A stretch of 64,000 nucleotides of DNA from contig NC_043009.1 of the NCBI RefSeq assembly GCF_006345805.1, positions 62,001-126,000 on the forward strand, in the 5' to 3' direction. Source of the DNA: Octopus sinensis (lineage: Eukaryota). A program made the translations under genes and the position numbers. Shown here piece after piece: positions 5,807 to 60,948 of the stretch. The notes under the pieces were generated by a model. The model was not told where the DNA came from and did not search any database. It saw only the letters and a program-made list of their open reading frames with translations. Each line of letters begins with the position of its first letter. The first letter of the stretch is position 1.

Positions 5807-5970
5807 GGCGCAGGAGTTACTGTGTGGAAAGTAGCTTGCTTACCAACCACATGGTTCCGCGGTTTCAGATTCACTGCGTGGCACCTTGGGCAAGTGTCTT
5901 CTACTATAGCCTCGGGCCGACCAAAGCCTTGTGAGTGGATTAGGTAGACGGAAACTGAAAGAAGCCCGTC

Positions 5971-6024
<54 letters not shown>

Positions 6025-6197
6025 GTATGAATGTATGTATGTATGTGTGTGTGTCTGTATTTGTCTCCCCACCACCGCCTGACAACTGATGCTGGGGTGT
6101 TTATGTCCCCGTAACTTAGCGGTTCGGCAAAAGAGTTCTGGGGTTAATTCGTTTGGTGCTCCAGCATGGCCGCAGTCAAATGACTGAAATAAAAAAA
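5807..6197 (+). mobile_element. SINE family A copy
   Basis: Colinear with 1379-1844 but lacking part of the 3' half. Confidence 0.85.
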
Positions 6198-9768: not shown

Positions 9769-9996
9769 TTTCTTTATTGCCGCAAGAGGCTAAACATAGA
9801 GGGGATGAACAAGGATAGACAAAGAGATTAAGTCGATTACAGCGACCCCAGTGCGTAACTGGTACTTAATTTATCGACCCCGAAAGGATGAAATGCAAAG
9901 TCGACCTCGGCGGAATTTGAACTCAGAACGTAACGGCAGACGAAATACGGCTACGCACTTCGCCCGGCATGCTAACGATTCTGCCAGCTCGCCACC
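9769..9996 (-). mobile_element. tRNA-derived SINE, family B (full length)
   Basis: The reverse strand reads ggtggcgagctggcagaatcgttagc...gagttcaaattccgccgaggtcgac...aataaagaaa. Near-identical copies: 15263-15495(+), 18130-18331(-), 27663-27891(+), 33935-34127(+). Older relatives lie near 2270, 3920, 4420, 6460, 17862, 22900-23450, 24210-24640, 33790, 38670, 47630, 53525 and 54830. Confidence 0.85.
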
Positions 9997-10360
9997 TATG
10001 GGTTGTCAAAAACATTATCACGCTTCATTTACTGCTTTATAATATGAGCTGACCATCTAAGTTTCGAATTCAGGGTTCGACTTAAGCTTCCTCGGCGTGG
10101 CGTGAGGGTCGGTAATACTAAAATATACTGAATATGCTCGCTACAAGTTAATGAAAGAGACTTACATGTAGTTGCTCGACCATCTAGAAACAGCAGCGAA
10201 ATCACTCTCAAATTACACCCCCAAGGCTTTAGGCGGATTGACTTATTGGGTAATGTAGATACATTGTTGCTGAAAATAAGTGGGAGTGATCACGGCTGGT
10301 ATGCATTTGGCCATAAGTCTGCTCAAAAAGCCTGGTCTGGAGCAAAACAACAGCAACAGT

Positions 10361-14959: not shown

Positions 14960-17086
14960 TACAGCCATAAATTAGTTCAAACTAGGTTAAATATGTAGCT
15001 GCGGTTAAGGTGTAGAACAGTATCTGTCAGTGTCACCAACGTCGTCATCAGGTTTCAGGTAAACCGATGATGGACCAGGAACGGGATTCTCAAGTGAAGT
15101 AGCATTACGAAAGAGGGCATTTTTAAAGACTTCTTCAAGTGTCATCTGTCTCATTAGCGTAAGTCCCTGATTAAGCAATGTCTCTTTAATTGAGTAAACT
15201 TCCCTAATATGTTGTTCGCCGATAAATGCACGTTGTTCAAGGCTAGATATTAACTGATCTAAGGCGGCGAGCTAACTGAATCGTTAGCACGCCGGGCGAA
15301 ATGCGTAGCCGTATTTCGTCTGCCGTTATGTTCTGAGTTCAAATTCCGCCGAGGTCGACTTTGCATTTCATCCTTTCGGGGTCGATAAATTAAGTACCAG
15401 TTACGTAGTGGGGTCGATGTAATCGACTTAATCTCTTTGTCTGTCCTTGTTTGTCCCCTCTATGTTTAGCCCCTTGTGGGCAATAAAGAAATAAAATATT
15501 AACTGATCACAAATTTTCACCATATCGTCCATAGGATTTTTTAAACTTTTGTTCTCTATGTTGTCATCAATACTGTCTTCATTCTTATTTGTATTTCATA
15601 CCATTTCAGCAATTTCCTTATCAGTCAAAGAATGCACAACAAGTGCATCGTTATCAATGTTTAGCATTTATTGACTTACTCTTGTTACTGTTGATTCATC
15701 AGCTTCATTCCAAGCATTCGCAACTGCGTAGGTAGCATCCTTAACAGCGAACTCTTTCAGACAGTCTTGCATTCTTACTCCTTTATTGACTGCATCAAGC
15801 ACACAGCTCATAAAATTATTTTTGTAGTTGTTCTTCATGGAGCGTTAAATTCCTGGGTCACAAGGTTGTAAAACAGATGTCATACTGGCAGGCAAGTAAA
15901 TGCCGAAAACATTAATTTTCACAAGAAGTTCGACAGGGGGATGTGCAGAGCAGTTGTCCAGGAAGAATAGAATTTTATAATTTTCTCCCAGTTCAGCTTA
16001 CTTGCAATGGTACAAAGTAATTATGGAACTAGTCACAAAATATTTCTTTGCTTACCCATGCTTTCTTGTTTGTTGACTACGCCTTTCAGACATCTCGGAT
16101 GTTGGATTTGTCCAAAGACTGCCAACTTCACCCTGTGTATACCTGCAGCATTAACACATCCAAGAGTGGTCAAACTTTCCTTAGCATCCTTAAAACCTGC
16201 TGGTGCTGTCTCATCTGCCGTTGTTAAGGTTTTTCATGAACGTAGCTGTTTCATCAGTATTGTAAATTTGTTCAGGAGAAAGGTTTTCATCAGATACGAT
16301 CTTGGCAAATTTATCTATGTAATTTTCCGCAACTTCATAATCAGCAGAAGCTTTTTCACTACAGATTTTCAGATATTTTACACCATGGTGCTTCTTAAAT
16401 TTCTGCAGCCAGTTTCTGAATATTGATACTCTCTTCAAATGCTGGATTCTTTATGATATATTCTAGCTTGTTTCGTGGCAAACAAACCATCCAGTGGCAT
16501 ATGTTCCCTTCGTTGTCGAATCCATTCTATCATCACACGGTCAAGATGTTCATTGTTTGCCCTATCTTGAGTTTTCCTATCTTCCATTAGTCATCCCTCA
16601 CTTCAAAACTTCAGCAATTTGTCTTTCTGTTTCTTTAATTCATACACAGTGCTGGTTCCCACATCAGATCCTTCGGTGAGCCGCCGCACAGACACACAAC
16701 GATCAAGTTTCTGTACTAACTCCACTTTCTGCATAACTGATAATGATAAATGTTTCCTTTTCTTATCCTCGCTGTTATCCATTGGGGTATCTGCAGTTCT
16801 TTTTGACATTTTCAGGGTAAATTATATACAAAGTCACAAGAAACAACACATAGACAGCAAACAACGAATGGACGTCTTCTCTCTACGAGTGCTGATCCAC
16901 ACCTAACGCTTGGTGGTAAGTGCTGACCAACCTGCAGAGCGTTACCACGTCATGCCTGAATGAGCCGGGTCACGTTGGTCAGCTGTTTGCGCACCAAATG
17001 ACCCCTGTTACGACGCACTCAGTCCTCCACAAAAAAGTTTGGGGTTTTCCGGATTTTAGATTTCTAGATAAAGGATTGTGTACCTG
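14960..17086 (-). mobile_element. pogo/Tigger (JRK/TIGD-like) DNA transposon, decayed, interrupted by a SINE
   Basis: Minus-strand pieces: HTH_psq MSKRTAD..KRKHLSLSVMQKVELVQKL; CENP-B-like WLQKFKKHHGV...EQIYNTDET; DDE_1 LFFLDNCSAHPP...LPASMTSVLQPCDPGI; C-terminus LEQRAFIGEQ...MRQMTLEEVFK (15100-15250). TIR ...aaggattgtgtacctg (17086) plus TA. The left TIR was not found. Confidence 0.85.
15263..15495 (+). mobile_element. SINE family B with 13-bp target-site duplication, inserted in the Tigger element
   Basis: TSD atattaactgatc at 15247-15259 and 15496-15508. Confidence 0.9.
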
Positions 17087-18129: not shown

Positions 18130-18331
18130 TTTCTTTATTGTCCACAAAGAGCTAAATTTTTTTTAAGTCGATTATATCGACCCCAGTGCGTAACTGGTAC
18201 TTATTTAATCGACCCCGAAAGGATGAAAGGCAAAGTCGACCTCGGCGGAATTTGAACTCAGAACGTAACGGCAGACGAAATACGGCTACGCATTTCGCCC
18301 GGCGTGCTAACGTTTCTGCCAGCTCACCGCC
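18130..18331 (-). mobile_element. SINE family B copy
   Basis: Reverse complement of the 15263 copy with a partly deleted tail. Confidence 0.85.
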
Positions 18332-18689
18332 TTACCAGTGTATGTATGTATGTATGTATGTGCCCCACACAACGGACCTCCACAATCCAGGCTTCACTTG
18401 GAGCAACGGTTTATTTTCACTTTACAGACTAATACCCCGCACGGACTCCAAAAACACAGCCCCCTCCTCTAAGTGACTGCGTCTCCACCTCCCGCAACAA
18501 GCAACTTTATTTCTTATTTCTTCCTTCTTTTCTCTTTTTTCTTTTTTTCTTTTCTTTGTCTTTTTTTCATTTTCTTTCCTTACGTGCTATTACGTCTTTT
18601 ATTTTATTTTATTTTATTATTTTATTGTTTTATTTTTTTTGTTTATATTTTTTAAATTATTTTATTGTTTTTATAAATTATTGTTCTTA

Positions 18690-27662: not shown

Positions 27663-28075
27663 GGCAAGCTGGCAGAATCGTTAGCACGCCAAGCAAAATG
27701 CTTAGAGGTAATTTCGTCTGCCGTTACGTTCTGAGTTCAAATTCCGCCGAGGTCGACTTTGCCTTTCATCCTTTCGGGGTCGATAAATTAAGTACCAGTT
27801 ACGCACTGGGGTCGATATAATCGACTTAATCCGTCTGTCTGTCCTTGTTTGTCTCCTCTGTGTTTAGCCCCTTGTGGGTAGTAAAGAAATAGGTATCTCG
27901 TCTGTCTTCATGTTCTGAGTTCAAATTCAACCAACGCTGAATTTGCCTTTCATTCTTTCTGGTCGATAAAATAAAGCACTAGCTGAACATTGGGGTCGAT
28001 GTAATCGACTTACCCCGTCCCCGTTCCTCGAAATTGCCGGTCTTGTGCCAAAATTTGAAATCGTTATTTATAGCT
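27663..28075 (+). mobile_element. SINE family B nested in an older related SINE
   Basis: Family B body and tail end at 27891; the older relative resumes at ggtatctcgtctg, repeating ggtaatttcgtctg at about 27707. Confidence 0.7.
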
Positions 28076-29650: not shown

Positions 29651-29766
29651 CAGGGTGTGGCAAAATGATCTGATACATTTGTAGGTTTAATAAAAGCAAA
29701 ATAGAGAAAAGAATGAAAAACTGTTATTAAACCTACAAATGTGTCAAGTCATTTTGCCCCAGCCTG
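29651..29766. mobile_element. 116-bp Tc1/mariner-type MITE
   Basis: 43-bp TIRs (cagggtgtggcaaaatga.../...tcattttgccccagcctg, 5 mismatches) with TA on both sides (29649-29650, 29767-29768). Confidence 0.9.
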
Positions 29767-29777
29767 TATATATATGC

Positions 29778-29849
<72 letters not shown>

Positions 29850-30618
29850 ACTATCTATTTCGCTTCTCCAAGTAAGTTTTTATTTGAATAATCATGACGC
29901 GCACTCTTACTCTTTACTTCACCTTTCCTCCCTGCCTGTCTGTCTTCCTCTCTACTTGCCTCTCTCCTTCTAATTTTTCACCCTTTCTGGTTTCTTACCC
30001 CCCTCCATCTCTCCTCCTCCTCTCTCTGTTTTGTTGACCAGAGCGCTACTAAAAACTTTCTTTCAGCTCCGTACCTTCCACAAGCATAGGCCGACTTCCC
30101 TGTCTTTCCGCAAGCCGATTTTTCACATGCGTTCTAACTAATTTTTTCACCGTCTAGGCCTAAAAAAAGCCCTTTTTGTTTGTTCATTGTCCTGTTATTC
30201 CTTATTTGTACTGTTTTTTCTACTGTCTCTTCTTCATTTGTATTGCTTTTACGTCCTGTTCTTGTCACTCGTTTTACCCCTCTGCAAAAGAATCTTATTT
30301 AATTCCTTTTTCAGGAAGGACTGCTTCGGCCTGGCCGTGTTCTGTCCTTAACTTCGAAACACGCATTGAGCCGAACCAGGGACAGCTGATGAAGGGGAAT
30401 TTTCCTTGTATTGTTTGTCCTGTACTCTGTTTTTTCGTTGTTAAAGAAAGTCCGTTTCCTTGTTTGATTTTGTTTTCGTTTCTCGTTGTGTTATACGTTT
30501 ATTTGTGGTGTCCTGTACTCATATATATATGCTTTTATATATACATGTAGATGTAAGTATGTACATATATGTATGTATATATGAATATATTTTATTTATT
30601 TATTATATATATATATAT

Positions 30619-35422: not shown

Positions 35423-35670
35423 CGCAGGAGTGTTTACGTCCCCGTAACTTAGCGGTTCGGCAAAAGAGACCGATAGAATAAGTACTAGGCTTACAAAGAA
35501 TATGTAATGGGGTCGATTTGCTCGACTATAGACGGTGCTCCAGCATGGTCCCAGTCAAATGACTGAAACAAGTAAAAGAGCAAAGGACTAAAAGAGTAAA
35601 TATGTTAATATGTATATATGCTAATTTCACCGTCTGAAAAATAGGAAAACAATGAGTGCTAAAGAGTGAA

Positions 35671-44200: not shown

Positions 44201-45904
44201 CAAGCCACGAGCACATCGAGCTGGTCGGCGAGAAACTGAAAGACTACGAAGCGGTGACAGGAGCAAAAATCAACCGGGGAAAAGTCAGTGGGCTTGCGGC
44301 TCGGCACCTGGAGAAGCAAACCCATGCCGTCCATCAGTACCTCCGTCGTGGGACGCTGGACGGACGGCCCGGTTGAGTTGCTCGGGGTCTGGTTCGGCCC
44401 GACCTCCAAATGGAGAAGAACTGGAACGAGATAACGAGTAGGGTGGTCACTCTCGCCCGGCAATGGGCCGAGAGGAAACTGTCCCTAAAAGGTCGGGCGG
44501 AGGTGGCGAACACGTACATCGCGTCCATCATCTACTACCGCCTGACCGTCGTACCTTGTCCCGACCCTACCATCACCAAACTAGAACGCATTCTCTTCCG
44601 CTTCTTGTGGAAAGGATGCGTCCCGATGGTCAGGCGATCCATTTGCTGTCAACACCCGTTAAAAGGAGGGCTGGGCATAGCGTGGTTGATGATGCGCAGA
44701 CGCGCTGAGACTGCGACATCTCCAGCTCTATGTAGACGACGGTGAACAGGTGTGGTCGCCGTTTGTGAGGCACGTGTTCCCGCAGCTCGTCTCCATGACC
44801 GAACTGCAGTCGTGGATCAAAAGGAGGCCGAAAAAGGGCGAATGGCACCGCGAGTGTCGCGTTGCTCTCAAGCAACTCTGCCGTCCCGGGTCGACTTTGA
44901 GTGACTTCATCACAACCAAAGCATTCTATAGGGGATTAGTGGAGGTGAGGTACGACGATGATCTTGGGGCAAACCTGGGCGTCGACGAGGAGTACCTGAC
45001 CCGCCTGTTTGAAACGACTTTCGGACCGGGACCTATGGACAACTTCCAGAGATCCCTGGCCTGGCAGTGCTACCGAGAAGCGCTACCCGTTCGGGATAAG
45101 CTCTATAGGCATGGCTTGAGAAACACGGGGCCGACCTGCCCGAGATGCGGGCAGAGCGACGAAACCGTTCTGCACGCAATCGTGCAGTGTCCAACAATCT
45201 CCGACCTGTGGGCTTATGTCGAACGACTGCTGTCACGTGTGGGACGTGTCGGTTTATCAGCCGAGTCTATCGTTAATATCGTCACGCCTCCTTCCTTCAA
45301 ACGTGAAGGAAGAGCTATTTTTTATCATACTTGTGACTATGGCGAAAGAATGTATCTGGTGGACGCACCTGAAAGGATTAGAGACAAACACTTTCCTCTC
45401 TGGTCAATCTCTCATCAACTTCTTCAAGTATCACTTGAAGAGGAAAGTGAGAGTAGAGAGGCAAGTGTTGTCTAGTGAATGTTTTAAAAAACAGATGGGT
45501 GAATGTAGCAAGGATGGCACGTATGAATGACGAAGCCACCTTGACTATGATCCTATGAACCCTAAAAATTAACACAGAGAGTTGCTTATTTGTAAAAAAA
45601 ATATAACATGTGACTTCATTGACCGAGGTTACCGTGGTCTTTTCCGTAGGCTTTTCTTTCCACGGGTAAACCTCACATGTCCTCCCCTTTACACTTTATA
45701 TTGACATTTCTGTGATAACGATCCCTATTGATCAATTTTTTCCTTTCACTCTTTTTACCTTTCCCCCTCTTTTTTTTGTCCTCTTTCTTTCCTTTTACGA
45801 TCCTTTCGATCGAAAACCAAACCCCCTTTTTTACCCCCAAAAGAAAAGCTCTACCTTGTAATTTGTCCTGTCTGTGTGCAGCCCTGTGTGACTAATAAAG
45901 AAAC
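41217..45904 (+). mobile_element. Tx1-like (L1-clade) LINE, 5'-truncated within ORF1, inserted in (ATCT)n
   Basis: Begins at HLKKEC (end of a CCHC knuckle). ORF2 from ATG 42122: APE (VNARGL, ISETRL, VYAP, GD*N, SYLDRI, TDH), RT (KSPGLDGLP, FRPITLLNTDLKI, DQSKAFDRV, QGCPLS, YTDD) and zf-RVT CPRC..ETVLHAIVQC. One stop (42545-42547) and several frameshifts. 3' UTR ends aataaagaaac; (ATCT)n on both sides. Confidence 0.92.
42122..45556 (+). pseudogene. Tx1-like ORF2 (endonuclease, reverse transcriptase, zinc finger), disrupted
   Basis: Assembled from track ORFs 41786-42547, 42557-43609, 43300-44376, 44410-44745, 44750-45475 and 45216-45530. Confidence 0.9.
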
Positions 45905-45905
45905 A

Positions 45906-45941
<36 letters not shown>

Positions 45942-45942
45942 A

Positions 45943-45998
<56 letters not shown>

Positions 45999-46100
45999 GT
46001 ATATCTATCTATCTATCTGTCTAGCTATCTGTCTGTCTATCGATCTATCTATCTATCTATCTATCTGTATATCTAATTATCTGTATATCTATCTATCTAT

Positions 46101-46749
46101 GAGCTATTTTCATCATCCTTGTGGCTAAGGCGAAAGAATGTATCTGGTGGACGCGTCTGAAAGGATTGGAGACAAACACTTTCCTCTCTGGTCAATCTCT
46201 CATCAACTTCTTCAAGTACCACTCGAAAAGGAAAGTGAGAGTAGAGAGGCAAGTTTTGTCTAGCGAATGTTTTAAAAACAGATGGGTGAATGTAGCAAGG
46301 ATGGCACGTATGAATGACGAAGTCACCTTGACTATGATTCTATATGAACCCAGAAATTGAAAACAGAGGGTTACCCACTTGCAAACAAATGTGGTAACAT
46401 ATAACAATATTGACCGAGGTTACCGTGGTCTTTTTCGTAGGCTTTTCTTCCCACGGATAAACCTTATCTGCTTCCCCCTTTTCACCGTACATCATGACAC
46501 TGATACACGATCCCTATTGATCGTTTTTTTTCCTCTTCCCCTTTTTCCTCTTTTTTCTTCTTTCTTTCTTTTTTCTTTTCTTTTGTTTCTTTTCCTTTTT
46601 TTCTTTTTTTTTCTCTTTTTTCTTTTTTCTCTTTTACGATCCCTTTTGATCGAAAACCTATGCCACTTTTTTTCCCATCCCCCAAAAGAAAAGCTCTACC
46701 TTGTAATTTGTCCCATCTGTGTGCAGCCCTGTGTGGCCAATAAAGAAAC
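46101..46749 (+). mobile_element. Second, heavily 5'-truncated copy of the same Tx1-like family, also in (ATCT)n
   Basis: Homologous to 45312-45904 with visible divergence, so an independent insertion. Same aataaagaaac end; (ATCT)n on both sides. Confidence 0.9.
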
Positions 46750-46753
46750 TTAA

Positions 46754-46827
<74 letters not shown>

Positions 46828-46928
46828 GTCTATCTATCTATCTATACACACACACTATGTAAATATAAAATATGAGAGCGGGAGAGTGAGAGTGGAGGAG
46901 GAGAGAAAGGCAGGGAGAAAGAGAGAGA

Positions 46929-47830: not shown

Positions 47831-47865
<35 letters not shown>

Positions 47866-47869
<4 letters not shown>

Positions 47870-49443
47870 GGACGACAATGTTCGACACACCCTTTGATTT
47901 GGACATGTTTTTGAGACAATAATATGTGGTTGAGGGATATTGGCTACTGTTCCTAACAGATCCAGCAATGACGTGGCGGTTTCGTCGTTGGCTCAGTTGC
48001 ATTTCTTTCTGATATAAAGTCTGTATAAAGCGGAAAAGTCACTGAGAACTGGTTAACCAGAAGATAGCTCGGTGTTTTCTACCAATCACATGATCAAGAC
48101 ACTTAATTTTCAATAGGCCAGTCCAACTAACTGTTGCTATGGTTATTTGTTTTCTTTAGTACAATGTCAGTTTTGACTGAGTAAACCTATGTTCGCAGGT
48201 AATCCAGCCGTGACCATACTGTCGTTTGAAGGAGAGCAAATCAAGCGACTATGTAGACAGTTAACGTTTGCTCGACTGCCTGTTGTTACCATTTAGTCCA
48301 AGGTAGTGGGTGTTTGCTGTAGTGCGTAAGGAGTAGCAGCATTGTTCACCAGTCAGCCGCACATTTTCATACATGGACAAGAGCACCACTAGTCCCCGAT
48401 TATTACACAGCCCTGACTTATGGCTCCCAGAAGTTAGAAGCGCACACCGACTGCCACACCACGGTATTTCACTTCGGTTAAAGAGGAAAATTAAATAGGG
48501 AGTATCAGCAATCTTGGAATGATTTGCTACGGGGTTCAGTTCCACCGCGTGGCACCTTGGGCAAGTGCCTTCTACTTTAGTCTCGGGATTACCAGACTTG
48601 TGAGTGTATTTGGTAGATGGCAACTGAAAGAAGCCCGTCGTATATATATATATAATATATATATATATATTCAGGACGACAATGTTCGACACACCCTTTG
48701 ATTTGGACATGTTTTTGAGACAATAATATGTGGTTGAGGATATTGGCTACTGTTCCTAACAGATCCAGCAATGACGTGGCGGTTTCGTCGTTGGCTCAGT
48801 TGCATTTCTTTCTGATATAAAGTCTGTATAAAGCGGAAAAGTCACTGAGAACTGGTTAACCAGAAGATAGCTCGGTGTTTTCTACCAATCACATGATCAA
48901 GACACTTAATTTTCAATAGGCCAGTCCAACTAACTGTTGCTATGGTTATTTGTTTTCTTTAGTACAATGTCAGTTTTGACTGAGTAAACCTATGTTCGCA
49001 GGTAATCCAGCCGTGACCATACTGTCGTTTGAAGGAGAGCAAATCAAGCGACTATGTAGACAGTTAACGTTTGCTCGACTGCCTGTTGTTACCATTTAGT
49101 CCAAGGTAGTGGGTGTTTGCTGTAGTGCGTAAGGAGTAGCAGCATTGTTCACCAGTCAGCCGCACATTTTCATACATGGACAAGAGCACCACTAGTCCCC
49201 GATTATTACACAGCCCTGACTTATGGCTCCCAGAAGTTAGAAGCGCACACCGACTGCCACACCACGGTATTTCACTTCGGTTAAAGAGGAAAATTAAATA
49301 GGGAGTATCAGCAATCTTGGAATGATTTGCTACGGGGTTCAGTTCCACCGCGTGGCACCTTGGGCAAGTGCCTTCTACTTTAGTCTCGGGATTACCAGAC
49401 TTGTGAGTGTATTTGGTAGATGGCAACTGAAAGAAGCCCGTCG
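47866..49443 (+). repeat. Near-identical tandem duplication of a 775-bp unit bounded by (TA)n
   Basis: Units 47866-48640 and 48670-49443; only a 1-bp indel seen (gaggg vs gagg); (TA)n at all three junctions. Confidence 0.95.
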
Positions 49444-54331: not shown

Positions 54332-56213
54332 GTGAGTTAGATATAAAACCTGCTGAAAGACGGAGGGTCGGTGACTAAACCGACCTCCTGTTACAGTAAG
54401 GCGGATGGAGGTACCGACTATATTACACTAACTATCCAATAATAAACACTGGAATTTAAAAACTCCAAAATTATATACATTCCGTGAAATATGCAACCAG
54501 TAATGGAGATAGCAGGGCCCTTATACTGTTTACGTTACATACATACATACATACATACGCACATACGTGCATGCATACACCAGGTGGTGATATTAAGTTA
54601 GACATGGCCTGGGCATATACTGGTGGAAACCTATCTAAGTTATATATATGAATGCATGGCTATTCGACTGGCTTTCATACAGCTTCCGTCTACCAAATTC
54701 ACTCACAAAACCTCGATCAGCTCCGGTTGCTATAGGAGAAGACATTTGGTCAAGAGGCTGCACCACGCATTGGATTTTCATTTTCCATTGGTACTGAGGG
54801 AAAAACCTCAACTCCAATAGCTAAACTCCAAGTTGTTCTCGGTAGGATTCGAACTCATAGCACAGAAGGCCTCAACGAATGCGACGAAGCATTATAACTG
54901 GCGCTCTAACGATTCTGCCAATTTGCTGTCTTGCTTTGCCTCGCAAATTTCCAAACTGGCTTTTAAAGATTATCGAAATTTTTGTTTACATATTAATTCT
55001 TCCCATTATTGATTTTTCCTTTTGCTTTGAGACAAAAGGAAAAAGAAATCTCATTTATTGGATAGGCCCCTGTATATTACTGATACTTATTTTATCGCTT
55101 CAAGTGCGATGAAAAAATGAAGTTGACCGCGATGATAATGGTGTTTCGAATATACAGTGATAACGGAACCAAATTCTGGAATACTTTTGCTTCGGCGCCC
55201 TACTGTATCTGGCAATTCATTTCAACATATAAATGTTTGATATACGAAATATTTACACGAACGGGAAAATATATTTATAAAGAATTTGAACTCACTGGCA
55301 TAAGGCTTTTCTGTTGCCCATGGCTCTATGGCTGTTTCGACCGAAATCCTTCACACATCTGCCTGCTTTTGACAACGTACAACTTCCTGACGTCGATGTC
55401 ACTGGAGAAAAGAAAAGAAAGATATAATTACTAGACAGGTATAACTGGTATCAAGTACTTAGACATCGACCCCTAAACAGTATCAGTTTGAAAAAGATTG
55501 ATTTTTAATTGGTGAATGATTTTAAATAGATTTTTAATAAATGAGTGATAGGACACATAACCACGCAGACCTTTTTAGAATGGTGACATACTAACACTAG
55601 TGGGGTAGTGTCTATCACTGTCATCTTGTCTTTTATCTTTTACTTCTTTCGGTCATTGGATGCGACCATGCTGGGGCACCAGGTTCAAGGTATTATCAAA
55701 CAAATCGACAGCAGTACTTAATTTTTAGTATGGTGATTATTCTATTGGACGTATTTGCTGAACTGCTATGTTACGTGGACGTAAACAAACAAACAGCGAT
55801 TGTCAGGCGATTGATGGGGGAGACAAAGACAAAGATACCCGCAGACATATGTACGTGGTGAGAAAATACAGGGGTATCAGTTAATTATGATTGTATTCAA
55901 CATATTCCCCTCTCAGATTCAAACACTTATTGCAGCGGTCTTTCAGTTTTTCTTATCCCTGTAAATGAAAAGAGTATGAGAAAGACGAAGAAACAGATAG
56001 ACAGGAAGAAAGGAACAGTGAATAGGACGATAACAGCTTATAGTCTCGGAATGACTAGGAAAAAGTTATGCCTTCCTCTCTGCCTGACTTTCTTCTTTCT
56101 TTTTCCTTCATTCTCTGCTTTCCTTCAGACTTCATTTCAATCTTTATTTCATTCTTTCTTTCCCTCTCGCTTTCATTCCCACATTTTTCTTCTTTATATA
56201 TACACACACACAC

Positions 56214-56465
56214 TGTGGTGTTTGGTGAAAGAGTGTGACGGATAGGGGAGAGCGGAAGTAGGGCTTGCAGGGCGCATGCGCCGCAGGAAGCGGAAGTGAC
56301 AGGCAGAACGCACGTGTGGATTTGACCAGTTGCGGCAGACACGACGAAGGCACCAGACGATCGAGTTGGCTAAAAGTGATCCGAGTTCATCTCCGACGAG
56401 GTAAGACCCAATTACATTTCCATTCTCCCCTTTTCTGTCGTACTCTTTTCACCGTTCACACTACA
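56214..56465 (+). repeat. 5' LTR (252 bp)
   Basis: Identical to the 3' LTR except one C/T (ctcccctttt vs ctcccttttt). Confidence 0.97.
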
Positions 56466-56477
56466 AGCTATTTCGGC
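56466..56477 (+). promoter_or_regulatory. Atypical primer-binding site complementary to nt 1-12 of tRNA-Phe(GAA)
   Basis: agctatttcggc is the reverse complement of GCCGAAAUAGCU and directly abuts the LTR CA; there is no TGG-type PBS. Confidence 0.75.
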
Positions 56478-56513
56478 AAATAAACACTCGGTTTTATAAA
56501 AATAGAAAAAATT

Positions 56514-57234
56514 ATGCAGAGTGCTCTGGTTTCGCGCGAACCTATAACGCCGTTTTGCGGCGACACTGATGTGGTCGCTTGGTTGAAGAGAGTGAAGTTG
56601 GTGGCGAAGCTCCATGGTATAGGTGACCTAGCGAGCTTCATGCCGTTGTATTTGGATGGCCCGGCGTTGGCGTTATATTTAGAGATGGAGGAGACGGACC
56701 AACTTAGCGCAGATAAAGTAGAAATCCGACTGATGGAGGCCTTTGCGGAAGGAATGTTCGAGACATACGCTCGCCTGGGTAGAATGAGATGGACTGGGCA
56801 ACAGGTGGACGTATTTGCCAATGAGCTTAGAAGACTGGCTAAATTAGCGGGTTATGAGGGAGAGTCGCTAGAACGGACGGTTAGGTTAGCGTTCGTGACC
56901 GGCTTTCCCGACATCATGTCGGTCGAGCTACAGAAGCTCCCGAACGTGCGTTCGATGCCGATGGCCGACATCATATCTCGGGCACGTGTACTGGTTTGGT
57001 GCAGCAGGATGACGTCGGTAGCAGCGACTGCAACGTCGAAAAGTGGCCCAGCTAGGAGCAGCGGAGAGGGGCTGAGGAAAGAACGTGTGCGACCGTTCAA
57101 AGGACAGTGTTTCCGGTGCCAAGCCTGAGGTGATTTGCTACCGGTGTCGAGAGCCAGGGCATGTAGCCAGCGAGTGTCTGCGGGGAAACGGGCCGCGGGA
57201 GACTACTGCGCCGGTAGTTGTCCCTTTGGATTAG
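56514..57234 (+). pseudogene. gag: Gag, frameshifted by a probable deletion in the first zinc knuckle
   Basis: ORF 56514-57128 ends CFRCQA*; an intact knuckle CYRCREPGHVASEC follows in another frame (57136-57177), ending at TAG 57232-57234. Confidence 0.85.
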
Positions 57235-57244
57235 TAGCGGCGCG
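57183..57244 (+). promoter_or_regulatory. -1 programmed ribosomal frameshift signal (G GGA AAC plus a predicted pseudoknot)
   Basis: The heptamer at 57183-57189 is in the gag frame and pol is in the -1 frame; 7-nt spacer; stem gggagactac/gtagttgtccc; loop tgcgccg is complementary to cggcgcg at 57238-57244. Confidence 0.8.
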
Positions 57245-60093
57245 TTTATCATCGCTACCTGTGGTCGACATTCTGGTGAAGGGGAAGATGTCGCGAGCCC
57301 TGGTGGACACGGGCTGTACAACGACCCTGATGACTACAGAAGTGGCAGAGACGTGGAGTGGAGGAAGCAGTGTTAGGGCAGTCGACGGAAGAGAAGTACA
57401 CTGCGAAGGAGTTACGGATGCGCAGATTGTGGTGCAGGGACTACAGCTGACGTGAGCAATTGTGGTTGGTCACTTAGTGGGCGAGATTGACGTGGTGATG
57501 GGGATGGATGCAATCACCCGCTTGGGAGGTGTTACCGTCAACGAGGCTGGCGTAACGTTTGGGTTAGCGGGGAAACCGTGTAGGGCGAGACCGTGCACCG
57601 ACGACAACCGTGAGGAAAAGGATGCGGCGCACACCATTGAAGACCAGGATTTTCGGGCTGTCTTTGATGGCAAGAGGTGGACAGTGGAGTGGCACTGGAA
57701 GGGAGATCCCCCGATGTTAAAGAATAAAGTGGGCTGCTATCAGCATACTCTAAAAGGAGATGCCAGAAGTGAGTTCGAGGGGGAGGTGGAGCGGTGGATT
57801 AAGGAGGGCATACTGATCCCTTGGGAAAAAGAAGAGAGCGGAGTTCTGCCACTGATGGCGGTGATACAGCCCACAAAGCATAAGGTCAGGCCAGTGCTTG
57901 ACTTCCGAGGGCTGAATGACCACGTGTCGTGTCATACAGGCGGCGAGGCCACGGATGTCTGCGGAGACACCTTGCGAGAGTGGAGGCAGACGACGGGGGC
58001 CTCCACGATTGTTGATTTGAAGTCGGCATACCTACAGGTGCATGTGGCTGAGAAATTATGGAAGTACCAGCTCGTCAGGTATAGGGGCCGGACGTACTGT
58101 CTGACCAGGTTGGGATTCGGGCTGAATTCAGCGCCGAAGATTATGGCAACAATTCTCAAGGCCATCCTGAGGAAGGTGGACAGAGTAAAAAGGGCCACCA
58201 ATTCATACATCGATGACATTCTGGTGGATGAAACCGTGATACCAGCAACGGAGGTCATAGGCCACCTGAAGAGTTTTGGACTGATCGCCAAGCCGCCAGA
58301 GGCTATGGAGGGAGGTGCTGCACTGGGCCTCAAGCTATGGAGAGACAAGGCTGGCGCCTTGGTGTTCCGGCGAGGGAATGAGGTCCCTGAACTGGGCGCC
58401 AGCATGAGTAGACGGGAATTGTTCTCTGTGTGTGGGAAGCTGGTGGGACACTACCCGATTGCAGGCTGGCTCCGGACAGCATGTAGCTTCATCAATAGAC
58501 GAGCCGAAGGAGTGAAGTGGAATGATAAAGTGGGGGAGAGGACGATCGACATGATGCAGGAAGTCTTGGTCAGAGTAGGAGCAGAGGACCCAGTGAGGAG
58601 CAGCTGGTATGTTCCCAAATCAAAGAGCGGGATCGTATGGTGTGACGCCAGTAGCATCGCAATAGGGGTTGTCTTGGAAGTGGGAGGTGTCACGGTGGAA
58701 GATGCAGCCTGGCTCAGGAAGATGGATGACTGCAATCATATCAACGTGGCGGAGTTGGATGCCGTGCTGAAGGGGGTGAACCTAGCCTTGAAGTGGGGGT
58801 TGCACACCATAGCAATCAGGACTGATTCGGCCACTGTGTTTGGTTGGGCGACAGCAGTCATCACCGATGAGCGGAGGGTGCGGACCAAAGGGGCTGCAGA
58901 GATGCTGGTAAAGCGTCGATTAGGAATACTGCGTGAACTAACCACTGAGTTCAATCTGAAGCTGAGCGTGATCTTTGTGCCTTCCGAGAAGAACAGGGCA
59001 GATGTCCTGACCAGGGTAAAGCGAGCCTGGTTGCAGGTGCCAGAGGATGCGAAGCAGGCTGTAGCTGCAGTATGCCGTCTGAGCGACTCGGAGTTACGGA
59101 GACTGCACACCATGCATCACATGGGTGTGGACAGGACATTGTTCCTAGCCAGAAAAGTTGATACCGACGTAACAAGACAGAGCGTGCAAAGAGTGGTTAG
59201 CAGTTGTGACAGGTGCCAGTCCATCGACCCTGCTCCGGTCGTGCATGAAGCGGGAAGTATTCCAGTGGACCAGGACTGGAAACGACTGGCGGTGGACATA
59301 ACACACTACCGGCAGGGGACATACCTCTCAAATGGTTGACTGCGGACCGGGGCGGTTGGCCATATGGAGGGAGATGAAGTCGGGGACCGCAGAAGAAATT
59401 GTGAAAGTGTTGAATGAGATATTCCTGGAACGAGGCCCCGTGGATGAACTGCTTCTGGACAACGGCACTACATTTCGCTCGGATGTGCTGAGAGAAATGC
59501 TTGATGAGTGGAAGGTCAACCGCTTCTTCAGGGCGGCATACCGGCCAAGTGGAAACGGGGTGGTGGAAAGGCATCATCGTACCATCAAGGCCATGGCAGA
59601 GAGGGGTCACATTTCACCAGTCGAGGCCGTGTTTTGGTACAATATGTTGCCCAGATCAGGACAGGCTGAGGAGTCGGTGCCACACAGGGCAATATTCAGG
59701 TACGAGTGGAGGCATCCGTGTACTACATCAATGCGACCCGGGGCAGAGGAAGAGCACGCCTTCGTGCAGGTCGGGGAGGAAGTCTGGGTAAAACCCCCAA
59801 ACGCACGGAGTACATCGCAATGGGGAAAGGGGACAATAACCTCTGTAAATTCAAAGAATAACATCTCGGTCGATGGTATGCCACGCCACGTTTTGGACAT
59901 ACGGAGGATTGTCCATGCCCCAGAGGATGGGACCAGCAGCAGTGGGCAAAACGAAAACAACAGACAGGATGACGAGGTCGGCAGCAACACACCAGGAACA
60001 AGTCCTAGGGTCGCACTGCGACCACTGAGGGAGCGGCACCCTCCTCCCTGGTTGGCTGATTATGAAACCAGTTTCAGGTGCGGGAGCGAGTGA
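57187..60093 (+). pseudogene. pol: Pol: aspartic protease, RT, RNase H, integrase (one stop, one frameshift)
   Basis: ALVDTGC; KVRPVLDFRGLN, VDLKSAYLQV, GFGLNSAP, YIDD; CDAS..HINVAEL..TDS; HHCC (H..HHMG..CDRC), AVDIT, LLDNG, GNGVVERHHRTIK. Premature TGA at 57453-57455; frameshift near 59330. Confidence 0.92.
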
Positions 60094-60129
60094 GGAAGCC
60101 GGTTCAGTGATCTGTAGATCTGGGGGGCG

Positions 60130-60381
60130 TGTGGTGTTTGGTGAAAGAGTGTGACGGATAGGGGAGAGCGGAAGTAGGGCTTGCAGGGCGCATGCGCCGC
60201 AGGAAGCGGAAGTGACAGGCAGAACGCACGTGTGGATTTGACCAGTTGCGGCAGACACGACGAAGGCACCAGACGATCGAGTTGGCTAAAAGTGATCCGA
60301 GTTCATCTCCGACGAGGTAAGACCCAATTACATTTCCATTCTCCCTTTTTCTGTCGTACTCTTTTCACCGTTCACACTACA
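60130..60381 (+). repeat. 3' LTR (252 bp)
   Basis: See the 5' LTR; preceded by tggggggcg. Confidence 0.97.
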
Positions 60382-60948
60382 CACACAAACAAATTTTCTC
60401 GAAACTTTTACGAACATCTAAATCTGTACTTAGAATAAAAAGAAATAAAATATATAAAGTTTTTGTTGTTGCTTAATGAAAGGCCGGTCCTAACTGAGTC
60501 AGACACATGATCAAAAGCAATACAGCTGTGACCATCCTATTATGCAAAGAAGAAATTTGGCTTCTACCACGTCGATCGACCACGTAGCATCACCCTCTAT
60601 ATTTGTTCTATTAACTTTTGTCGTTATTTATTGAAAAGCCACTCCTGAGTTAGACCTATGAACAAAGGCAGCTGTGAAAATCCCACGATGGAAATTTGAA
60701 TTCTATACAAAGTAAGATGACGACAATTTTAAAATGCGCACGCACACACACACATGCACACAAACGCTCGCACACAAACACACACACACACACACGCACA
60801 CAAAGGTGTTCTCACACGAACATGTTTGTTAAACTAGGAAAAAAAACGGAATGAGTGCTATAAAAACAGAATACATGTAACACAAAAGACCATGAACTTT
60901 ATACTATACAGAGCGTGAGAGACGGTGGGACAGCGAGAGAGAGAGTAT

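Follow-up and report, generated by a model that had tools for sequence, protein, structure and literature searches.

A survey of plant LTR retrotransposons recognized three types of primer (PMC6317226), namely, the complete tRNA, a half tRNA produced by a cut in the anticodon stem, and the self-primer. At the canonical primer-binding sites (PBS) of retroviruses and LTR retroelements, the site starts with TGG, complements the 3' end of a tRNA and either abuts U5 or is separated from it by 2 nt; its length is 18 nt in HTLV-1 and other retroviruses (PMC11251516) versus 12 nt in the family described here. The half-tRNA elements of the Ty1/copia group, which include Drosophila copia, Ty5, Osser, and Bianca, have an LTR-edge site without TGG that pairs with the anticodon stem-loop of initiator Met tRNA, the primer being a 5' fragment of ~39 nt cut in the anticodon arm (PMC6317226). 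In Tf1, Tf2, and sushi elements, the primer is a very short piece (11 nt) of the element's own transcript that comprises its physical 5' end and is presumed to be released by RNase H from an RNA-RNA duplex, and the plus-strand copy runs off the 5' end of this primer. Retroviral primer sites are rewritten from their tRNA primers in each cycle, and some LTR retrotransposons have primer sites shorter than 18 nt.

The 64,000-nucleotide stretch of Octopus sinensis DNA analyzed here (the window) contains a single LTR retrotransposon of 4,168 bp on the + strand, with the order gag-PR-RT-RNase H-IN between its LTRs. It was recognized as such by a TG..CA LTR pair, a 5-bp duplication, and all five gag/pol domains (Pfam and motifs). 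The 5' LTR (56214 to 56465; 252 nt; TGTGG...CTACA) and the 3' LTR (60130 to 60381) are direct repeats, both on the + strand, that are identical at 251/252 positions, and they are bounded by two identical copies of the target-site duplication CACAC at 56209 to 56213 and 60382 to 60386; 5-bp duplications also flank four relatives (L001 to L003 and L074). The sequences following the two LTRs first differ at base 56466, and the edge of the LTR is therefore unambiguous. Directly at this edge lies the block that we consider a candidate PBS, AGCTATTTCGGC (56466 to 56477, + strand), followed by a short unconserved leader (56478 to 56513; information content of ~0 bits from position +13). The 48 nt from the LTR end to the gag ATG at 56514 contain no TGG.

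All remaining features also lie on the + strand. The gag gene (56514 to 57128) encodes a CCHC knuckle, within which it is ended by an in-frame TGA at 57126. The aspartic protease (DTG; 57135 to 57455) is in the gag frame and is cut by an in-frame TGA at 57453; its Pfam matches to gag-asp_proteas and RVP are weak and below the cutoff. The RT (YIDD), DUF7047, RNase H, and integrase zinc domains follow at 57462 to 59339 (Pfam DUF7047, 1.7e-22, plus RVT_1, RVT_3, RNase_H, and Integrase_H2C2), and the integrase core and C terminus (59332 to 60093; Pfam rve) are read in the +1 frame, indicating a frameshift near 59332. The window copy is thus defective in gag, protease, and integrase. In its relatives Pol is one continuous open reading frame of ~950 amino acids, and copies with both gag and Pol intact exist. 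That the window copy has two TGAs and a frameshift despite LTRs that match at 251/252 positions could reflect a defective copy mobilized in trans, fast decay, or assembly errors. The 3' LTR is preceded at 60109 to 60129 by a small hairpin (GATCT/AGATC), a G-run polypurine tract (60122 to 60127), and a 2-nt spacer, CG. A scan for tRNA genes in the window and in 60 loci (L001 to L060) found none.

Other repeats are present in the window. Arrays with a 12-nt period and repeats of a unit of ~790 to 800 bp occupy 45319 to 46858, 29700 to 29879, and 47851 to 49037 and are unrelated to the element; 300-nt copies at 47935 and 48738 are 100% identical. Four dispersed repeat pairs of 81 to 94% identity (1430 to 1624 and 5860 to 6054, 15313 to 15493 and 27711 to 27891, 9828 to 9997 and 18163 to 18332, and 1682 to 1850 and 35424 to 35592) may derive from other mobile elements, either as LTRs or as fragments.

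The block at the LTR edge is the exact complement (12/12) of nt 1 to 12 of metazoan tRNA-Phe(GAA). A published northern probe for the 5' part of Drosophila tRNA-Phe, GCTCTCCCAACTGAGCTATTTCGGC, has the 12-mer as its 3' end (PMC7038984), and a forward primer for human Phe(GAA), GCCGAAATAGCTCAGTTGGGAG, starts with the reverse complement of the 12-mer (PMC10505166); together these oligonucleotides establish that the 12-mer complements nt 1 to 12 of tRNA-Phe common to both species. The predicted RNA duplex of block and tRNA-Phe has 12 bp and a free energy of -18.7 kcal/mol. The 12-mer occurs once in the window, and within the open literature searched the only papers carrying the site sequence itself were those with tRNA-Phe northern probes. 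The first-pass annotation of this stretch had flagged the interval 56461 to 56480, which spans the final 5 bases of the LTR, the whole 12-mer, and the 3 bases after it, and had reported that the 12 nt adjoining the LTR lack TGG and complement nt 1 to 12 of tRNA-Phe. That observation is confirmed by the sequence and by the fly and human oligonucleotides. Its interpretation, that a short 5' tRNA fragment may serve as primer, is supported by the sequence comparisons below. The main ground for regarding the match as more than chance is that all relatives examined keep the block at this position.

A search with the RT-to-integrase open reading frame returned 916 homologs, mostly of ~950 amino acids and on contigs of 3.6 to 4.8 kb. 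Named hosts among them are Argonauta hians, Aplysia californica, Petrolisthes manimaculis, and Oratosquilla oratoria. We retrieved 80 loci encoding relatives and examined the block in ~45 related elements, which come from molluscs, crustaceans, and environmental samples, share 43 to 79% Pol identity, and have LTRs that cannot be aligned. The elements of this family are compact, at about 4.0 to 4.4 kb. A scan of IMG/VR returned no Pol relatives, and two protein searches returned no new named hosts for the crab element or for the clades carrying the CGC and CAC forms of the block described below.

In every locus where the gag N terminus is present, the LTR end, ..ACA, is followed directly by AGCTAT-NNN-GGC, and in relatives for which both LTRs are available the block is flush with the LTR end. 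The gag ATG follows 0 to 104 nt after the block, often at 0 to 4 nt. The information profile stands at ~2 bits from -3 to +6 and from +9 to +12 and at ~0 upstream of -6 and from +13; the sites in this profile were picked by pattern, so its conservation is partly by construction, and this concern is largely removed by a separate survey that found gag through protein similarity. Each edge of the block falls on a physical boundary, one being the end of the LTR (U5) and the other the point at which nt 1 of a tRNA would end. The invariant bases are those that pair with G1, C2, and C3 and with A7, U8, A9, G10, C11, and U12 of the tRNA, the partners A7 to U12 being the start of the box A region, and the variable bases are only those that pair with nt 4 to 6 of the acceptor stem. 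The first-pass annotation had proposed following the site through the family and distant Pol homologs, where a variable or TGG-type site in sister copies was to count against it. We found a 12-nt block at the LTR edge throughout and a TGG-type site never, and variation among sister copies is confined to the positions pairing with tRNA nt 4 to 6.

Several features of individual relatives were recorded during this survey. In two loci (L013 and L026) and ~15 others, the gag ATG lies 0 to 4 nt after the 12-mer, making them almost leaderless, and any packaging signal in those loci must therefore sit in U5, R, or coding sequence. The LTRs of one Argonauta element (L001, 1970 to 1987) end in CAAG instead of CA and its complementarity to tRNA-Phe reaches nt 13, which would fit two primer-derived bases having been retained at the end of U5. 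Many metagenome contigs (L005, L007, L010, L012, L023, L025, L026, and others) are approximately one element long and circularly permuted, running from Pol through the LTR and the site to gag; these could be products of LTR collapse by the assembler, one-LTR circles, or tandem copies. In assembly ERZ25072293, a gene with the BEL/Pao gag domain DUF1759 (L077, 1 to 697) adjoins a family member.

Bases 7 to 9 of the block take six recurrent states, TTC (13 elements), CGC (12 elements), CAC (7 elements), CTA (6 elements), CCC (2 to 3 elements), and CCG (2 elements), and there are a few single odd copies besides. The partner of the TTC form is GCCGAAAUAGCU, found in tRNA-Phe, and that of the CCG form is GCCCGGAUAGCU, the 5' end of tRNA-Lys(UUU), a string that recurs in many tRNA-Lys3 papers. 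A tree of Pol showed that the states are interspersed and do not follow the phylogeny: CGC and CAC alternate in several clades, and one well-supported clade has CTA at three or more places. An element carrying TTC (L076) and the crab element carrying CTA (L002) are sisters on short branches (support 100/100), so that two bases switch between them, and no intermediates between TTC and CTA were seen among the surveyed elements. A single origin of the CTA elements was not rejected by the AU test (p 0.098, calculated before L075 to L079 were added), and the argument for convergence consequently draws on the host pattern and on the tree built later with better sampling. A convergent origin of the states is suggested, not proven, by these comparisons.

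The host pattern is as follows. The mollusc elements, one from Aplysia and two different ones from Argonauta, are all TTC (3/3), and the malacostracan elements all have a non-Phe form (3/3), with those of Petrolisthes and Oratosquilla carrying CTA. Two distantly related elements from assembly ERZ25072293 are also both CTA. Where the host is named, the state thus appears to follow it, on a count of six named-host elements. States that are discrete, recurrent, and host linked and that change by multibase jumps are what would be expected if a trans-acting host RNA were copied into the site in each cycle.

In phage contigs, the 15-mer corresponding to CTA starts tRNA-Phe(GAA) genes in 9 of 10 cases, and genes for Phe, Thr, Ile, or Met tRNAs begin with the other variant strings. 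Strings of the variant form are therefore genuine tRNA 5' ends, an observation that is silent on eukaryotic hosts. The incomplete literature collection that we searched held no paper giving the CTA, CGC, CAC, or CCC strings as tRNA sequences, the one match to the CCC string being a chloroplast marker paper. As nt 1 to 12 of tRNA-Phe are the same in fly and human, a different tRNA-Phe in crustaceans would not be expected a priori, and the partner there may be another tRNA.

We hypothesize that the block is a PBS to which a host tRNA anneals through its first 12 nt, instead of its 3' end, and that a short 5' fragment of that tRNA primes the minus strand; we would put the probability of this reading at roughly 65%. 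The primer tRNA would be tRNA-Phe(GAA) in the window element and its mollusc relatives, and tRNAs of the pattern GCC-NNN-AUAGCU would serve the other members. From the pairing pattern we infer the identity of the primer, the cleavage of the tRNA, and the enzyme that cleaves it. The leader of the genomic RNA would invade the acceptor and D stems and pair with the 5' strand of the tRNA, which would then be cut after nt 10 to 12 in the D stem, most simply by the RNase H of the element acting at the end of the RNA-RNA duplex. The resulting fragment of 10 to 12 nt would prime minus-strand strong-stop DNA and so set the U5 edge of the block. Plus-strand strong-stop synthesis would copy the primer to its physical 5' end, which would set the other edge and regenerate the site in each cycle. 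Under this scheme, a tRNA starting with GCCGAAATAGCT is expected in mollusc hosts and one starting with GCCTAGATAGCT in crustacean hosts. Against this reading, the described tRF-5 classes are longer than a 12-nt primer that ends in the D stem.

The paired part may be 12 or 10 nt long. The 2-nt spacer between the G run and the 3' LTR means that the AG at the start of the block is possibly a trimmed U5 dinucleotide, in which case the paired part would be 10 and not 12 nt, and this 2-nt spacer before TGT resembles the 2-nt end trimming of retroviruses. The AG is invariant and the spacer on the left side variable, which favors pairing of AG with C11 and U12. A motif consisting of the hairpin GATC-N3-4-(A)GATC, a G run, usually two variable bases, and then TGT was present in at least 14 loci of distant clades (window, 60109 to 60129; L002, 6618; L003, 5415; L016, 4266; L017, 4162; L021, 5439; L025, 2190; L029, 3249; L036, 1605; L072 to L075; and L077). 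This conserved hairpin may help to define the plus-strand primer.

The half-tRNA elements resemble the family in using a 5' tRNA fragment at an LTR-edge site without TGG; however, the family site pairs with nt 1 to 12 and would require a cut in the D stem instead of the anticodon arm, the tRNA is of the Phe type and not initiator Met, and the gene order is PR-RT-RH-IN and not that of copia. With Tf1, Tf2, and sushi the family would share a very short primer (10 to 12 nt here), the physical 5' end of an RNA, the presumed release by RNase H from an RNA-RNA duplex, and a plus-strand copy that runs off the 5' end of the primer, whereas the primer of those elements is their own transcript and the family site has no complement in cis and a partner that matches host tRNA 5' ends. 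Tf1, in which RNase H frees an 11-nt 5' fragment, is by analogy the closest mechanistic counterpart, with a host tRNA probably taking the place of the transcript here. As in canonical tRNA 3'-end priming, the site lies at the edge of U5 and would be rewritten in each cycle, which would explain the discrete switches between tRNAs. The family also shares with canonical retroelements its 5-bp duplication and a polypurine tract (a G run) followed by a 2-nt spacer, whereas its site has neither TGG nor a complement of the tRNA-Phe 3' end.

Some of these established systems were searched for directly. A canonical tRNA 3'-end site was rejected, as the leader has no TGG and no tRNA-Phe 3'-end site with three or fewer mismatches in 14 was found near the LTR in 11 elements. 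A half-tRNA site was likewise rejected: complementarity is limited to nt 1 to 12, and nothing at the LTR edge matches nt 25 to 40 of tRNA-Phe. A second, bipartite complementarity to tRNA-Phe was sought and not found. The integrase does not precede RT, which excludes a copia-type gene order.

The similar primer length in Tf1 (11 nt) and the absence there, too, of a tRNA 3'-end site make it conceivable that the primer is cut from the element's own transcript after its 5' end has folded back onto the block. The first-pass annotation had found no complement within the LTR of the window element, and this holds, the best match within 400 nt upstream being 8/12, which is at chance level. Across 37 elements, complements of the element's own 12-mer within 400 nt upstream occur only at chance level (median p of 0.71), and among 35 elements the whole sense strand contains no complement with two or fewer mismatches. 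These results contradict self-priming, which we regard as very improbable. As an observation in its own right, the absence of internal complements when ~6 were expected across the 35 elements hints at avoidance of competitors for the site. Still more improbable is a chance resemblance in a decayed copy that has lost its real site. The two in-frame stops and the frameshift of the window copy could be read in that way; against it, the LTRs are identical at 251/252 positions and ~45 relatives have the block, among them copies whose gag and Pol are intact.

The two other explanations that we weighed accept that the block is functional and differ on what it binds. The string GCC-NNN-AUAGCU may belong to a different small RNA of the host, or to a tRNA-like transcript of Pol III (the RNA of a tRNA-derived SINE, for example), that serves as the primer, in which case the match to tRNA-Phe would be indirect. 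A tRNA partner has been assigned to just 2 of the 6 states (TTC and CCG), and the crustacean string differs from the 5' ends of fly and human tRNA-Phe and tRNA-Lys, as such a primer would allow. However, the constant AUAGCU at +7 to +12 and the limit of conservation at +1 are consistent with a tRNA 5' end, 12/12 matches to known tRNAs exist for two states, and we know of no fit of GCC-NNN-AUAGCU to the 5' or 3' ends of 5S, 5.8S, 7SL, U6, Y, or vault RNA; we consider this explanation unlikely. It is slightly less likely again that the block is a conserved cis signal beside U5 (for packaging, dimerization, or the binding of Gag or integrase) and that priming occurs by other means. The palindromic AGCU, the CGCG, CUAG, or CCGG held by some variants, and the partial pairing of the block in the predicted local fold (unpaired probability of 0.39) are compatible with such a signal. 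A cis signal, however, leaves the two-base switches between sisters and the association with hosts unexplained, and the variants TTC and CAC lack any extra palindrome. Its position, fixed relative to the LTR edge and variable relative to gag, is the hallmark of a primer site, and leaders that are often only 0 to 4 nt long offer no alternative one. Pairing of the block with the 5' end of a host tRNA remains the reading that we prefer.

The lineage was also compared with the known superfamilies of LTR elements. Ty3/gypsy, BEL/Pao, and retroviruses share its gene order, gag-PR-RT-RNase H-IN. In profile matches, the integrase is nearest to those of MMTV and HIV and the RT to that of HIV-2, and no Ty3 chain is among the best 60 PDB matches listed. 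The RNase H matches the Pfam families RVT_3 and RNase_H and not the gypsy-type RT_RNaseH and RT_RNaseH_2, and no BEL/Pao families (Peptidase_A17, DUF1758/DUF1759, or DUF5641) were found in the window proteins or in the Pfam lists of ~200 homologs. In contrast to the known superfamilies, the family has a compact Pol of ~950 amino acids with DUF7047 between RT and RNase H. Pfam and PDB profiles do not place the clade in any one of the superfamilies.

Neither topic nor sequence searches returned a description of a PBS complementary to a tRNA 5' end, in a library that is short of subscription-journal papers. The statement in the first-pass annotation that no described clade primes in this way agrees with this search of an incomplete library and with the three primer types of the plant survey (PMC6317226). 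On balance we lean, by a little over even odds, toward a fourth class of minus-strand primer, consisting of the 5'-terminal 10 to 12 nt of a host tRNA cut from the D stem by the RNase H of the element. This primer would be used by a widespread, unclassified, compact lineage whose hosts are molluscs, crustaceans, and many uncultured eukaryotes of aquatic and soil habitats; the lineage would switch between tRNAs and track the 5' ends of those of its hosts. With a site for the very 5' terminus of a tRNA, the three primer types listed in that survey (PMC6317226) would become four. If the proposal is correct, a nuclease step that cuts a tRNA in the D stem is implied. Searches by the standard annotation tools are directed at tRNA 3'-end sites, and this would explain reports of "no PBS" for such elements. 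Hosts are known to control retroelements through 3' tRNA fragments (one example is PMC7472051). If 5'-end priming is correct, such 3' fragments would not touch the elements described here, whereas 5' fragments could. The family is abundant, with hundreds of Pol clusters on contigs of ~4 kb, and it would thus offer many natural variants for the evolution of primer choice.
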